Assembly: GCF_001194135.2 (NCBI RefSeq)
Contig: NC_068986.1
Span: 51,440,297 to 51,504,296, forward strand
Source of the DNA: Octopus bimaculoides
Taxonomy: Eukaryota
Reading direction: 5' to 3'
Length of the DNA stretch: 64,000 nt
Shown here: piece by piece, positions 3,806-19,385 of the stretch
Layout: every line of letters begins with the position of its first letter
How positions within the stretch are numbered: position 1 is the stretch's first letter
The notes under the pieces: generated by a model
The model's database searches: none
Told to the model about the DNA's origin: nothing
The model's input: only the letters and a program-made list of their open reading frames with translations
Made by a program: the position numbers and the translations under genes

Positions 3806-3985
3806 CTGATGCATGGTGAAAAGTTGCTAAAGAAAAGTTGCTATCACTTGACTGGTGAATTGGCTGTTTCTCTTTCTCTTTATCTGCATGCATATAACTT
3901 GATGATGGAAAAGTGTCCAGTGCTGTACTTAACCTATCATCAGAGCTGGTTTGAGATATTTTTCGAAAAAAATGAGATATGGTAC
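3806..3985 (-). CDS. NCX: Paralogous cassette exon 3 (180 nt, phase 1 to 1): GTISHFFRKISQTSSDDRLSTALDTFPSSSYMHADKEKEKQPIHQSSDSNFSLATFHHAS
   Basis: tgttctattctag|GT ... TCAG|gtcagt. It lies within ORF 3783..4133 and its N-terminus matches exon 2. Confidence 0.8.
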
Positions 3986-6900
3986 CTAGAATAGAACACA
4001 TGGCATATATTGACACACCAATATCGTTTAGCTCAAGTTTTAACATGAAATAATAGTGCAAGGCTGCTCGTTCCAGGAAAATGTGATGCCATGTATGAAA
4101 AAAGCATTTGAAAATTTTTGGTCTAATAACCAACAGCTACTGATAATTTTCACCTAATGTGAATAGAAATTTTTGAGTAAATACAATTACTAAGGAAAAC
4201 AAGTTTTTAAAAAAAAATATACTAGTTGTTTTTACTTATAACCAAAACATTTATTTAGAGAAACTATTTAAAAAAAGAAATCTTATGAAGTATATAATTG
4301 AAAATTATATATTCATTTTATAAGGATATTTTGAATAGTTATTTGAATATCAGTGTTTGGTGTATATGGAGCAAATTCCTCTAGAATAATATATGCTGGA
4401 AGAATTCAAACAAGAACTAATAGCTTTCACAAAACATAACAAAAGCTTCAGACCATTTTCTAAAGAATTGTCAGCTATCATGCTGTGCTTCACATTAACT
4501 GACTTGATTGATTAATTCAATAAGATTTTGGATAATTCTCAAAAGGTAAGAATAGTGAAAAGAATACTTTTCGTTTTGTTTTGGCTTTTTTTTTTTATAT
4601 AGAGATATGGCAATTGAATTATTTTCAATGCTGTACGAAATAGTTTGCATGACACTGTAGTTTAGCTGGTCACTCATTTCAGAATACTTGGCATCAATAT
4701 TCATTTTTAAGATAGATATATGGAAAAACAGAATATTGAACTCTTAATGATAGTGAAGACGACTGAAACAATACAGGCTTCCATATTATTCTGTTCTCAA
4801 ATATTGGTTTCAAATTTTGGTACAAGGCCAGCAAGTTTGGAGAAGCTCAGTCAATTACATCAACCCCAGGGCTCAAGTGGTACTTATTTTATTGACTCTG
4901 AAATGATGAAAAGCAAAGTCAACTTTGGTTGAATTTGAACTCAGAACACAAAGACTCAGCATTTTGCCCAGCATGCAAACAATTCTTCTATCTTGCCCTT
5001 TTACTGTTCCCAAATACTGTCTTCATCAATGTAAAAGCATTTTTACAACATTCTTTTCTTATACCTAGCTTTGCTAAAACATAATATTACAAAGATCTAG
5101 AACAGTTTGGTTATTTCATTCTTTTTCCCATAATGTCATTTGTTGCAATCTACAAGAATCATAATAGTCTGTGGAAAGTTTCATTTCTAAGCGTGATAGA
5201 TGGCAGAGTTGTCAGGATGTTGGAGAATATACCCTGTGTTAATTAGTTACATCTTTCAATGTTCTGAGTTTGAATCATGTTGGGTTTAAGTATGTTTTCA
5301 TCTTGCCAAGGGTCAACAAAACAAGTACCACTTGGTATACAATCAGTTGTTATCTGCCCACAAAAGTATCAGTGGGACTGACCATTCAACAGATGCCTCT
5401 CATCACCAAAAGATCACTCAACTGGTTATTGATCTGAACCGGAGCATGAAGTCATCATCATTATCGTTTAACGTCCGTTTTCCAAGCTGGCATAGGTTGA
5501 ACGGTCTGACAGAAGCTGGAATCACCAAAGAGCTGTCTAGGCTTCAACTGTCTGTTTTGGCATGATTTCTATGGCTTGATACCCTTCTTAATGCCAACCC
5601 TTTACAGAGCATGCTGGGTATTTTTTACCTGACACCAGCATGAGTGCATCGTACATGGCACTGGCATGAGTGCATTGTATGTGGTACTGGCACAAAACAG
5701 TAATAAACGTAGGTTAGTCAATCATAAAGAACCCCAAAGCAATGATAATTGGGTCATATTTAAAAACTAGCAGACTTGTTATGCCATCAACTAAATATGG
5801 TATACAATCTGACATCTTAATGAAGACAAACCCTACTGTGACCTTAAATAACATTACTTAACTCTGTCACAATCCAACAAGTGTGGTAACTATTGAAGAG
5901 TTTACACATCTACAAACCAACCAAAATGACTCAGTATGAACAACAATGTGATAATTGTATGATTATGTACAACCATAAATGGCATAGATTATAAGTAACT
6001 TAATTCCAAGAGAAAACATTATAGAAATTTTATATCTTATATATCAGACAACACATAAGTTTTGTGATGTCTTCTATATTCTGTCTTAAATTACTTTCCA
6101 CATTTCAAACCAATGGGAGAGCATCTGCACAAATGTTCAACCTACTAGAAACAACAGTCATATTTTCCTCCAACCATACCTTAGCATGTAAGAAAAAAGT
6201 GTGTATGTATGTGTGTGTGTGTGGGGGGGGGCATCACATTAGATAGTATAGTGCTTCGCATACATAAAAGTAGCTGCTGGAACACTAGTTATCATGATCC
6301 TAAATATTTTTTTTTGTACAATAGTTTCCTTTAAGTCTTTTCTTTTGATAGATTCTCTCATTTTAAGGTTTATTTGGCTGTTCACTATGCCAAGAAAGAA
6401 ACCTCTATGTGGTTGCTTGGCCTGCAAAAAATAGCAGCCCAGTCGCTTTCATATCACACATTAGCATTTTTTTAAAGGATGCATTGGTAAAAGCAGTCAT
6501 AGAATTACTGTAACAAAAGAAAAAGAAAGAAATAAAAATTATCGGATGGACGTAGCTGAAAAACTTGTGATCATAGGTCAGCTCACTCAGGAATTATTTA
6601 GAGTTAAAACACCATCACCACCACCACAACCTATACATATATCCATCATAATCAATGACTATGTGGATCAACCAGATGTGTTTCTATGGCAATGTGCAAA
6701 TGGATGGATAAATGCAGACATCTGCCATTATTATCACACATTATATCATTGCTTTGCTTGTAAATTACTACTAATCTACAAAATAGTTGTTAACAGACGA
6801 CAAGAATACACGCTAACTCACACAAACCATTTTGACCTGGAGATGGCAACAAAAGGCATGTTTTTTTTTCTTCTCTTTCCCTGATTTGGATGGTGGGGTG

Positions 6901-16440: not shown

Positions 16441-19214
16441 GATAACTTGGAATTGTTAAAATGTTATCAACATAGTTGTACTGCACCAGAATAACATTTC
16501 ATCATCATCATTTAATGTCAGTTGTCCATGCTGGATGGTTTGACCAGGACTGGTAAGCTGAGGAGCTGTACCAGACTCCAGTCTGATTTGGCATGGTTTC
16601 TACAGCTGGATGCCCTTCCTAACACCAACCACTCCAAGAATGTAATGAGTGCTTCTTACGTGTCGCTGGTATGGGTGCCAATTGATAAATTTTTTCTATT
16701 TCTGCTGTTATCTCAGGAAAATATTTTATCCTGCTAATGATTAAAAATATTAAAGTATAATGTCACAAAGAAAATATTGTGCCTTCAATTTCTATAGTTT
16801 AGACTGTCTAATCCTTTAGCATTTAAACCTGCCATATCTGACCAAAATATTTTACCTATTTTATGTTCAAATTGGCCAGATCTGGCTTCTAACACCAACC
16901 CTATGATATTATTCTAAAAATTAGCAGTTACCTCATCAAAATCTTAAAACTAAGATATAATGCATGATTAGTTCATAATAATGTGAATAAATAAGTATTA
17001 CTCTAGACAGAACAATCTGAAAGCTAAAGGGTTAAAGCGTTTCCTATATATAGTATTCTTTTGATACATTTTCAACAGAATGAATAACTTAATAACAAAA
17101 TGAATAACTCAAATAAAAATGGACCAGTAGATTATCATGAACAATTCTATGTGATTCAGTAGCTCTTTCATTTTGTGACATAAACATAAAAATAATTTCA
17201 GAGTTGTGCTTGTCTTGCAAGTAACTTGATCTGAAACCAGGTGTCAAATCATGGAATAATGATGCCATTTACTAACACATAAGGCTGTTGAATTCACTTC
17301 AAATTTATCTATTCAATTATTTTCCTTGCACAACTGTGACCTGGTCACTGGTAAAGTTCCAGCGTTGATAGTGGAACTGTGTTAGTGATGACATAACAAT
17401 TAAGCGATGAAAAGTTTGATACCTCATGAAATAAATTTAAAGGAAATTTAATAGCTTTGTGTTATCAAGTGGTTCTTCCACAACGTAGTTGATAAAAATA
17501 ATAGGTAAGAGCTTCCAAGGTAGATGAGAAATCAAGCGGCTGACAAAAAATACAGTTTTCAAAGATGCTCTCTTCTAAGACCGCAGTTTCAGTATTATCT
17601 AAATGGAACTTACACCATTTCAAAAATCAAATGTTTCAAGAAAAATGCAATCTAAAAGAAACTATGGTTCCTTATAAACTTCTAACCATTTTGTAGTTAG
17701 TTTATCTGAATAACTGAAATTTCCAAGAGCTAGTAATATACTATTTCCTGTCTTAAAAGCCACTGAAGTGAAAGTGTATGACCTAATGGTTAGGGTGTTG
17801 CATTCAAAATAGCAAGGTCGTGGTTTCAATTCCCAGACTGGGTGGTGTGTTTTGTTTGGAGAAAAACATTTCATGTTGCTGCAATCCACTCTGCTCTTAA
17901 TGAGTAACCCTGTGAAACACTGGAATCCCATTCAAGGTCAATATTGTGATTGTGCTCACTTATATGTAGTGGAAACCAAGTAGCAGGTTTCTATGAGTCC
18001 TAGGACTTGAGTCAGCAATGTCCAGGGACTGATGATGATGATTTCAATGATGATGACAATGTTCATAATGATGATGTCTATGACGATGATGATGATTGAG
18101 AACAATTATACACGAACAACCTGATACTGTCGTAAAATAGAACAACAGTAAGTGTAACAGTATAAACGCATTTTAAAGGACTGACATGAGTCATGGTGTG
18201 TATGTAACAAGCATGAAATATTAAGTTACATTAAGTTTAAAAAAATATTCATAAACCTTTTAGATGAAAGAAACTATTTAATCATATTTCATTAAGTTAA
18301 ACCTAAATTTGTGCATGTGTATGTGTGTGTGTGAGAGAGAGTGTATCATACCTGGATATCAAAGTAAAACAATTATTTCTAACACAGTAAAATAAACTGA
18401 TAAACCAAGTTAATAAAATACTTGCTAGACATAAAAAAAAAGATGCAGTTTCAAATATCAACATCATTAATGAGAGGAGATAGCTATGCTTTTATATGGG
18501 AACGATAGTTAGGTTTAGTGAAGAAGATAACTAGAATCATAAGAGGGGTGAGTAATCAATTAAAATATAAATACAAGTAAATAAAATATTACATGAAACA
18601 GAATATAATTGATTTGCATACTGACTATACTATGTACACAGCAGAGTAGGCAAGGAGTGGTTGCTTAAAAGCTTTACTATCACTAAGATTATAGATTTAG
18701 ACACTCATATGTTATAGGGGTATCTTGCTGAAAGGGCTGGTATTAGATAACAGAACAGGAGGGAGTATTAGTAGAAATTAGAAGGGCACTCACAAGTCTA
18801 GCAAAAAAGAAAAAAAAAAAAAAAAANNNNNNNNNNAAAAAAAAAAAAAAAAAAAAAAAAAGCCAGGTGATGGTGTGGGCATAAAGAGCTCTCAAATGCA
18901 TACCATTAGCATTATATAAACATACATATATTGCTAGGTGCTGAAAAATTGCCTTCTATGTAGGGCCCACTTAAGCAAAACACACAGATAAAGCTAAGTC
19001 ACTTCAAATTAAGTAAGGAGCAATAAAGTTCTACATAATTTGTTCATTCATTTTATTATAAATGCTATATATATATTTTTTCAACCTGCTGGGCTAACGC
19101 ATTACTTCTCAATAGTGCAAGACGCTTGGAACACATGAAAACGGTGGAGGCTTCATTCCTAAAAATCTACAAGACTGGTGACTGGTGACTGCTTTTGTGA
19201 CAGTTATGACTGAC

Positions 19215-19385
19215 CTGACATACGTTGTCGTATGGGTTCATTGCTTGCAGATGTAGAACTGCCAAAATCCTGTCTTTCAATAAGAGGAATCATATTTGAG
19301 TAGGGTGTCCCAGAATGTACCGAGACATTTGTCTCATCCAGAAAACAGCTGACATCACATTCTTCAAAATAGCGTGATATAGAAC
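19215..19385 (-). CDS. NCX: Paralogous cassette exon 1 (171 nt, phase 1 to 1): GSISRYFEECDVSCFLDETNVSVHSGTPYSNMIPLIERQDFGSSTSASNEPIRQRMS
   Basis: gctatttttag|GT ... TCAG|gtcagt. It lies within ORF 19204..19398 and aligns with the exons at 7903-8094 and 3806-3985. Confidence 0.8.

Follow-up and report, generated by a model that had tools for sequence, protein, structure and literature searches.

Tandemly duplicated cassette exons with conserved R-K-x-S modules at the CBD2 loop of an octopus sodium/calcium exchanger

Results

Five exons of an NCX/SLC8 gene

The stretch of DNA analyzed here, 64,000 nucleotides of Octopus bimaculoides contig NC_068986.1 (the window), contains on its minus strand part of the NCX/SLC8 sodium/calcium exchanger gene of this species. 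Five exons lie within it, in the order AB, micro, E1, E2, E3 (Table 1): a constitutive CBD2 exon homologous to exon A/B of NCX1, an optional micro-exon, and three longer cassette exons that arose through tandem exon duplication. Spliced together, the five exons match residues 581–801 of XP_052824690.1 exactly, and RefSeq describes this O. bimaculoides protein as "sodium/calcium exchanger 3 isoform X1." The same protein was the one match of a three-exon profile among 1.84 billion representative proteins (E = 1.7e-79, in three stretches). Word-indexed protein searches with the exon peptides returned nothing, or one genomic open reading frame from a decapodiform read set (L001), from an index that evidently missed the RefSeq octopus proteins. 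The constitutive exon encodes the end of a Calx-beta domain, is identical in XP_052824690.1, and bears the CBD2 signatures DDEEYEKNETFF and DDEEYEKN; Pfam PF03160 (Calx-beta) is recorded on a search hit (P0001). The alpha-repeats lie outside the window, in proteins that hold window exons: LGSSAPE is found in one of these (P0002) and GTSVPD in an Octopus sinensis protein (P0006) on which the Pfam domain Na_Ca_ex is recorded twice. Within the window, neither alpha-repeat motifs nor a second copy of exon A/B were found, and a single A/B-type exon is present.

HMMER alignment to the human NCX1 structures 8sgi and 8jp0 identifies CBD2 with an E-value of 1e-60. It locates the octopus insert between NCX1 residues 608 (...GEPRLVE) and 665 (SKEEEERRIAEMGRP...), such that the insert replaces residues 609–664 of 8sgi. 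The NCX1 segment at this site is the part that differs between the two solved isoforms; it is the FG loop of CBD2, encoded by cassette exons C–F. E1–E3 and the micro-exon sit between the exon for the end of CBD2 (the homologue of NCX1 exon A) and the exon for the CBD2 helix and last strand, and their full inclusion adds up to ~188 Ser-rich residues to the CBD2 FG loop. An earlier note on this DNA, made from the sequence alone, had called the three cassette exons Ser-rich and apparently disordered. Serine indeed makes up 21% of the 181-residue insert. Composition and loop position suggest that the insert may be disordered, and a charge–hydropathy test, which put the insert and a folded CBD2 control on the same side, did not discriminate between them.

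The three exons share one architecture. Each has a length divisible by three, its first two bases completing a Gly codon and its last base being left over (phase 1-1); every combination of the three stays in frame with the upstream phase-1 donor and the downstream exon. All three have the donor TCAG/gtcag. The 9-mer TCAGGTCAG occurs three times in the window, each time at the donor of E1, E2, or E3, at a chance expectation that we estimate at ~0.1 per strand. The E1–E2 intron is 11,120 nt long and the E2–E3 intron 3,917 nt. The 3′ end of the micro-exon, TCAG/gt, resembles those of E1–E3.

The encoded peptides are related as well. The earlier note had claimed that all three start with G-[ST]-[IM]-S-x-x-F, that E1 and E2 resemble each other at both ends (S.F[LV][DE][ED]T...[VL][HN]S and P[IM].QRMS), that FRKISQ of E2 and E3 is replaced by FEECDV at the same position of E1, and that the exons are symmetric, keep frame, and end in TCAG/GTCAG. 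Each of these features is found on the minus strand at the coordinates of Table 1. In shuffle tests, the E1–E2 similarity reached z 6.1–7.2 and the E2–E3 similarity z 6.0–6.2, the observed score being attained by none of 1000–2000 shuffles. The similarity of E1 to E3 is weak alone (z 2.3–3.2), and E1 compared with the cuttlefish E3 described below gives z 4.7. The best non-self tblastn match of E2 in the window is E3 (E = 0.002), and a 34-nt DNA match between the two spans the FRKISQ codons. RKIS occurs only twice across the three minus-strand frames of the window, and no fourth paralogue was found in the window by tblastn or with a hidden Markov model (HMM) of the family. By the shuffle tests, the RefSeq match, and the NCX1 alignment, the exons are true paralogues within an exchanger gene, as that note had supposed. 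The module that they repeat opens with ~20 constrained residues, G-x-[IM]-S-x-[LF]-[FI]-R-K-[IF]-S-Q-[ST]-S-..., while the rest of each exon is a fast-evolving spacer, rich in Ser and charged residues, that ends in Ser/Gly.

Table 1. Exons, motifs, and an adjacent assembly gap in the O. bimaculoides window, with the cuttlefish counterparts found in locus L002 (a slash marks a splice junction)
Feature	Position	Strand	Description
Constitutive CBD2 exon (AB)	62665..62565	minus	NCX1 exon A/B homologue; encodes KFLRVRVFDDEEYEKNETFFIWLDEPFLVKKPA; phase-1 donor GCAG/gttagt
Micro-exon DTESAHS	31803..31783	minus	21 nt, optional, phase 1-1; tatag/AT...TCAG/gtaaat
Cassette exon E1	19385..19215	minus	171 nt, 57 codons including split Gly; acceptor tttttag/GT, donor TCAG/gtcagt; acidic copy
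EECD in E1	19354..19365	minus	Column-for-column with RKIS of E2/E3; Asp at the Ser position
Cassette exon E2	8094..7903	minus	192 nt; acceptor attttag/GC, donor TCAG/gtcaga
RKIS in E2	8063..8074	minus	Basophilic-kinase consensus inside conserved block LFRKISQSSFVEDTIETL
Cassette exon E3	3985..3806	minus	180 nt; acceptor ttctag/GT, donor TCAG/gtcagt
RKIS in E3	3954..3965	minus	Consensus inside block FFRKISQTSS
Assembly gap	18827..18836		A18-N10-A25 homopolymer (plus strand) in E1–E2 intron, 379 nt past E1 donor
Cuttlefish E2 orthologue	L002 39162-39353		GRISSLIRKFSQSSFVEDTIETL...; tblastn E 4.8e-12; 192 nt as in octopus
Cuttlefish E3 orthologue	L002 40519-40701		GTISQLFRKISQTSSIED...; tblastn E 2e-12; 183 nt
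Cuttlefish micro-exon DTDSTHS	L002 ~30095-30115		

Annotated use of the exons

Among the gene models of two Octopus species, the three cassette exons are used as a whole block or skipped as a whole block. The RefSeq isoform X1 of O. bimaculoides runs through AB, micro, E1, E2, and E3 and then continues past the E3 donor to a stop; X2 joins AB and the micro-exon to the next exon, and X3 joins AB to the next exon directly. The micro-exon is annotated in X1 and X2 and skipped in X3. Two O. sinensis models, X1 and X2, are full length (1092 and 1091 residues); both contain the micro-exon, E1, E2, and E3 in series and continue beyond E3 into the C-terminal membrane half of the exchanger. E1, E2, and E3 stand in tandem in the gene models XP_052824690.1, XP_036359785.1, and XP_036359786.1, and including and skipping isoforms are both annotated, the skipped form having also been cloned in squid. 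In the annotation, the exons thus behave as ordinary cassettes, and no choice among the three is apparent.

Several features of the models bear on the ends of the gene. The sequence through which X1 reads past the E3 donor (3786–3805, minus strand) encodes GQFKVKF and then a stop. The four isoforms annotated for O. bimaculoides are all truncated; the assembly divides the gene, the C-terminal membrane half, XP_014790009.2 (223 residues), being found on an unplaced contig of 11.6 kb. X2 and X3 of O. bimaculoides end in AEKSNAEDKKEKGFLITTRSLK after ...EAITVNA, where one cuttlefish model has AKDEGGGSEEKASKGFATIS (proteins P0003, P0005, and P0011). These two sequences, which lie outside the window, suggest that the loop has one more conserved optional exon farther downstream. 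A decapodiform transcript contig from Logan (L003) was considered as evidence for exon joining and set aside; it keeps the intron upstream of the "next" exon and is uninformative on the exon joined.

The whole-block pattern bears directly on the proposal of the earlier note that exon choice may switch the kinase response. On this reading, the exons would be mutually alternative, basic RKIS and acidic EECD would toggle responsiveness, and E1 would supply a constitutive phosphomimetic-like state. The exons do possess the traits of known mutually exclusive clusters, being tandem, homologous, of similar length, and of the same phase, and E-E-x-D of E1 falls exactly at the R-K-x-S position of E2 and E3. 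There is also a vertebrate precedent: in the part of PMC2230537 that cites He et al. 1998, the AD variant of NCX1, and not BD, is reported to be regulated by the cAMP-dependent kinase. However, every annotated model that has one of the exons has all three in series, in both species, and the models do not show the pattern of at most one member per transcript. Nor was an enforcing mechanism found. The earlier note was right that frame is kept by all three exons and that spacers of 3.9 and 11 kb exclude steric interference: the E1–E2 and E2–E3 introns are too long for it. U12-type incompatibility and nonsense-mediated decay are excluded likewise, as all splice sites are of the GT-AG U2 type and co-inclusion retains the frame. 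A k-mer scan for a shared complementary docking or selector site gave only AT-rich or microsatellite matches. Finally, E1 is undetectable in cuttlefish, so the pairing of an acidic with a basic copy is not the ancestral design. The description of E1 as an acidic replacement stands, the alignment being gapless with Asp at the Ser position and Glu-Glu at Arg-Lys, and the acidic stretch is conserved in O. sinensis as FEECDA. Its role as a phosphomimetic alternative fares worse, given that E1 shares an annotated protein with E2 and E3. We consider a toggle between mutually exclusive exons quite improbable.

One candidate for a docking pair was considered and rejected. The 10-mer ATAACTGTCA is found at 19198–19207 and 7868–7877 (minus strand), 8 nt past the E1 donor and 26 nt past the E2 donor, and its sole complement lies at 46261–46270, within the long intron upstream. 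Pairing stops at the ends of the 10-mer, chance alone would give ~0.1 such matches, and cuttlefish lacks the 10-mer.

A second reading is that E1, E2, and E3 are independent cassettes, combined as freely as exons C–F of NCX1. This would give up to 8 insert variants (16 with the micro-exon) carrying 0–2 kinase sites, and model building would have produced the all-or-none pattern as an artefact. Several observations are in its favor: all exons are symmetric and any combination keeps frame, the micro-exon is already independently optional (X2 versus X3), the same suboptimal donor is found on all three cassette exons, and the NCX1 cassettes are used in tissue-specific combinations (PMC2217150, PMC2408596). 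Against it, though weakly, no annotated isoform among the members of one 90% cluster contains just one or two of the three exons. Free combination is, in our judgment, unlikely.

Conservation in octopus and cuttlefish

Comparison with other cephalopods indicates which parts of the exons are maintained. Within Octopus the comparison was made at the protein level, the O. sinensis gene spanning 316 kb. Identity between the two species is 93% for E1, 95% for E2, and 93% for E3, and 97–98% for the structured parts; E3 of O. sinensis has an in-frame insertion of one codon relative to O. bimaculoides. A more distant comparison was obtained by searching the 88.7-kb locus of the cuttlefish Acanthosepion pharaonis (L002) with the octopus exons. 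It contains a micro-exon and orthologues of E2 and E3 (Table 1). These follow the octopus order, with the AB exon on one side and the next constitutive exon on the other, and the E2 and E3 orthologues have the same boundaries as in octopus. The annotated cuttlefish models (CAE1255968.1, CAE1255970.1, and CAE1255973.1) skip all three, despite the intact frames and splice sites of E2 and E3. Both cuttlefish exons end in TCAG/gtcagt, and this 9-mer occurs nowhere else in the locus.

Orthologues are much closer to each other (z 13.7 and 14.9) than paralogues are (z 6–8). The duplication that separated E2 from E3 therefore predates the octopus–cuttlefish split, the deepest among living coleoids. 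By contrast, no E1 orthologue was found in the cuttlefish locus by tblastn, motif scan, or HMM. E1 has been found only in Octopus and is nearest to E2 (z 7.2 with octopus E2 and 5.5 with cuttlefish E2). Either the cuttlefish lineage has lost this old copy, or E1 is a fast-diverged octopod duplicate of E2.

The divergence between octopus and cuttlefish is distributed very unevenly along the exons. In E2 the nonsynonymous divergence (dN) is 0.15 over the first 22 codons and 0.78 over the remainder; in E3 it is 0.10 over the first 18 codons and 0.63 over the remainder, which comprises ~41 codons in each exon. For comparison, dN of the CBD2 exon is 0.06. Synonymous divergence (dS) is saturated at this distance, and the introns flanking E2 and E3 show no conservation past the splice sites and cannot be aligned. 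Moreover, between E2 and E3 themselves the six FRKISQ codons differ by three synonymous changes and no nonsynonymous one. Given the low dN of the block and these exclusively synonymous differences, constraint acts on the peptide, centered on [LF]-[FI]-R-K-[IF]-S-Q-[ST]-S. On these codon comparisons, the RK[IF]SQ[ST]S block is under strong purifying selection. The remainder of each exon has retained its length, its Ser-rich and charged character, and its Ser/Gly end, but not its sequence.

These results also bear on whether the exons are functional at all. One could suppose that they are annotation artefacts, or an exonized intron without function in which RKIS has no role. Consistent with this, X1 ends by reading through E3, the cuttlefish annotation and the squid cDNA both lack the exons, and the profile and word-indexed protein searches gave no homologue outside cephalopods. 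Yet frames, exact boundaries, and the donor 9-mer are kept between octopus and cuttlefish while the introns have become unalignable, dN in the motif block is much lower than dS, the one indel between Octopus species is in frame, and the full-length O. sinensis models pass through E1–E3 into the C-terminal transmembrane half. An artefactual origin is therefore highly improbable in our view. E1–E3 are real, ancient cassette exons.

The R-K-x-S motif and the splice donor

Conservation of RKIS had been singled out in the earlier note as a check on its proposal, and the motif passes it. RKIS is kept in E2 and E3 of O. sinensis, the cuttlefish orthologues read RKFS (E2) and RKIS (E3), and the motif lies in the slowest-evolving block of the exons. 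The 13 residues after the E2 motif, SQSSFVEDTIETL, are identical in octopus and cuttlefish. In the entire octopus protein, [RK][RK]x[ST] is found at four sites, two of them in E2 and E3, one near the N terminus, and one in a conserved TRKLT. The peptides bearing the predicted kinase sites are LFRKISQSSFVEDT and FFRKISQTSSDD.

The kinase itself is less sharply indicated by the motif. E2 and E3, as well as their cuttlefish orthologues, agree with the PKA consensus [RK][RK]-x-[ST], while the +1 residue is Gln in all four E2/E3 orthologues and departs from the hydrophobic +1 that PKA prefers. The context includes a hydrophobic residue at −5, Arg at −3 and, in E2, Phe at +4. A hydrophobic(−5)-x-R(−3)-K-x-S context fits the consensus of CaMKII, PKD, AMPK-type kinases, and PKG as well as that of PKA. 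The assignment to PKA in the earlier note may thus be correct, and the motif would suit other basophilic kinases equally.

The splice donor shows a conservation of its own. C at +3 is non-consensus, and it is invariant in five exons across two lineages, whereas the donors of neighboring exons differ between species. We suggest that the donor has likely been kept weak so that inclusion can be regulated. The read-through end of X1 would fit an inefficient use of the E3 donor.

Discussion

A proposed regulated insert next to the CBD2 calcium sensor

The explanation that best accounts for these observations, and that we consider probably correct, is that E1–E3 are alternatively spliced cassette exons of an NCX gene, produced by tandem duplication, that place conserved R-K-x-S modules into the FG loop of CBD2. 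Splicing would determine whether the insert is present, with the non-consensus donor held weak to make inclusion adjustable. Once the R-K-x-S modules are included, a basophilic kinase (PKA, PKG, CaMKII, PKD, or AMPK-type) could dock at them or phosphorylate them, and their location beside the CBD2 Ca2+ sensor might allow them to modulate ionic regulation of the exchanger. E1 is, on this account, a divergent copy whose basic residues and Ser have been replaced by acidic ones.

Several considerations weigh against this explanation. Phosphorylation of the Ser residues is a prediction from the motif, Gln at +1 is suboptimal for PKA, and PKA regulation of vertebrate NCX is itself disputed (PMC7199655). 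Alternatively, the conserved block might bind a protein and have nothing to do with kinases. In addition, the evidence for co-inclusion and skipping comes from Gnomon models, and such models can merge junctions that never occur on one molecule. Since X1 reads through the E3 donor, part of its support may come from unspliced RNA. Lastly, the cDNA of squid NCX-SQ1 "uses only exon A," and nine nerve clones obtained by reverse-transcription PCR gave no other form (PMC2217150), so expression of the insert may be rare or tissue-restricted.

It is useful to contrast the octopus exons with cassette exons C–F of vertebrate NCX1 (SLC8A1). Both occupy the same alternative-splicing hot spot of NCX, directly following the exon A/B homologue and preceding the "...EEEERRIAEMGRP..." helix and the last strand, and both consist of small, optional, in-frame exons that are skipped in some isoforms. 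In NCX1 the C–F region tunes ionic regulation (PMC2230537, PMC2217150). The two sets nevertheless share no sequence similarity, and the octopus insert does not align to NCX1.1. It is also longer (181–188 residues, compared with 56 in NCX1.1), and in octopus and cuttlefish, unlike in NCX1, it is built of two or three paralogous copies of one module. The insert is cephalopod-specific, and therefore its origin is independent of exons C–F. Thus, vertebrates and cephalopods have each, independently of one another, expanded the CBD2 FG loop with optional exons.

Exons A and B of NCX1 and NCX3 offer a second comparison. They too are tandem-duplicated, homologous, of similar length, and located in the same region of the gene. 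However, A and B code for a structured portion of CBD2 and never occur together, whereas the octopus exons encode a loop and are co-included in the models. A further lineage-specific exon of this splicing region is that of frog heart NCX1, where an extra exon of 27 nt reportedly confers cAMP-dependent regulation (Shuba et al. 1998, J Biol Chem). Like the octopus exons, it is an added exon, and it was proposed to make the exchanger respond to cAMP signaling. The frog insert differs in having 9 residues, in being proposed to complete a P-loop rather than to serve as a kinase substrate, and in being unrelated in sequence.

Within coleoids, NCX-SQ1 of the squid Loligo opalescens (GenBank U93214) is the product of the orthologous gene and contains none of E1–E3. 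Its "47-residue deletion" relative to NCX1.1 (PMC2217150) maps precisely to this splice region, and it matches the form that skips everything, X3 of O. bimaculoides. As far as PMC2217150 and the references in PMC5843346 describe it, ATP regulation of NCX-SQ1 operates via PIP2 and the soluble ReP1-NCXSQ, not via a loop phosphosite. Ca2+- and ATP-dependent regulation of Na+/Ca2+ exchange was defined in the squid exchanger, the classical preparation for such work, yet cloning and study have so far been confined to the nerve form that lacks the insert (PMC2217150). The alternative form described here contains a core module older than the octopus–cuttlefish divergence, with a basophilic-kinase consensus at its center, and provides a concrete candidate for direct phospho-regulation of an invertebrate NCX. 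Our literature search found no paper describing cephalopod NCX splice exons. New here are the paralogy of the modules, the depth to which the R-K-x-S module and its donor are conserved, and the unannotated cuttlefish orthologues, the last of which flag exons missing from the annotation of the cuttlefish genome.

A broader idea would treat the coleoid CBD2 insert, with its repeated 20-residue kinase-gated modules, as a modular phospho-rheostat. The number and kind of modules (RKxS or the acidic copy of Octopus), varied by splicing and by exon duplication, would set how strongly a second-messenger kinase is coupled to Ca2+ extrusion, and the insert would have evolved independently of the vertebrate cassette exons of this loop. 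We regard this more speculative scheme as doubtful.

Gaps and repeats in the window

The assembly gap in the E1–E2 intron (Table 1) touches no exon and no reading frame, and the orthologous O. sinensis protein has zero residues between E1 and E2. Four more assembly gaps (26507–26830, 40036–40317, 46982–46991, and 60846–61414) sit in the introns that join the CBD2 exon, the micro-exon, and E1. From the window alone, these could hide a small exon, and the O. sinensis protein has no extra residues there. Elsewhere, a dispersed repeat resembling a short interspersed element (SINE) is found, for example, at 13546–14034 (+), 21048–21197 (−), 42729–43211 (−), and 45510–45830 (−), and yields recurring reading-frame fragments such as ...EDTCPRCHAVGLNPEPCGWEA... 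on both strands. Together with many (TG)n, (TA)n, and (TATG)n microsatellites, this repeat accounts for most of the long open reading frames in the window.

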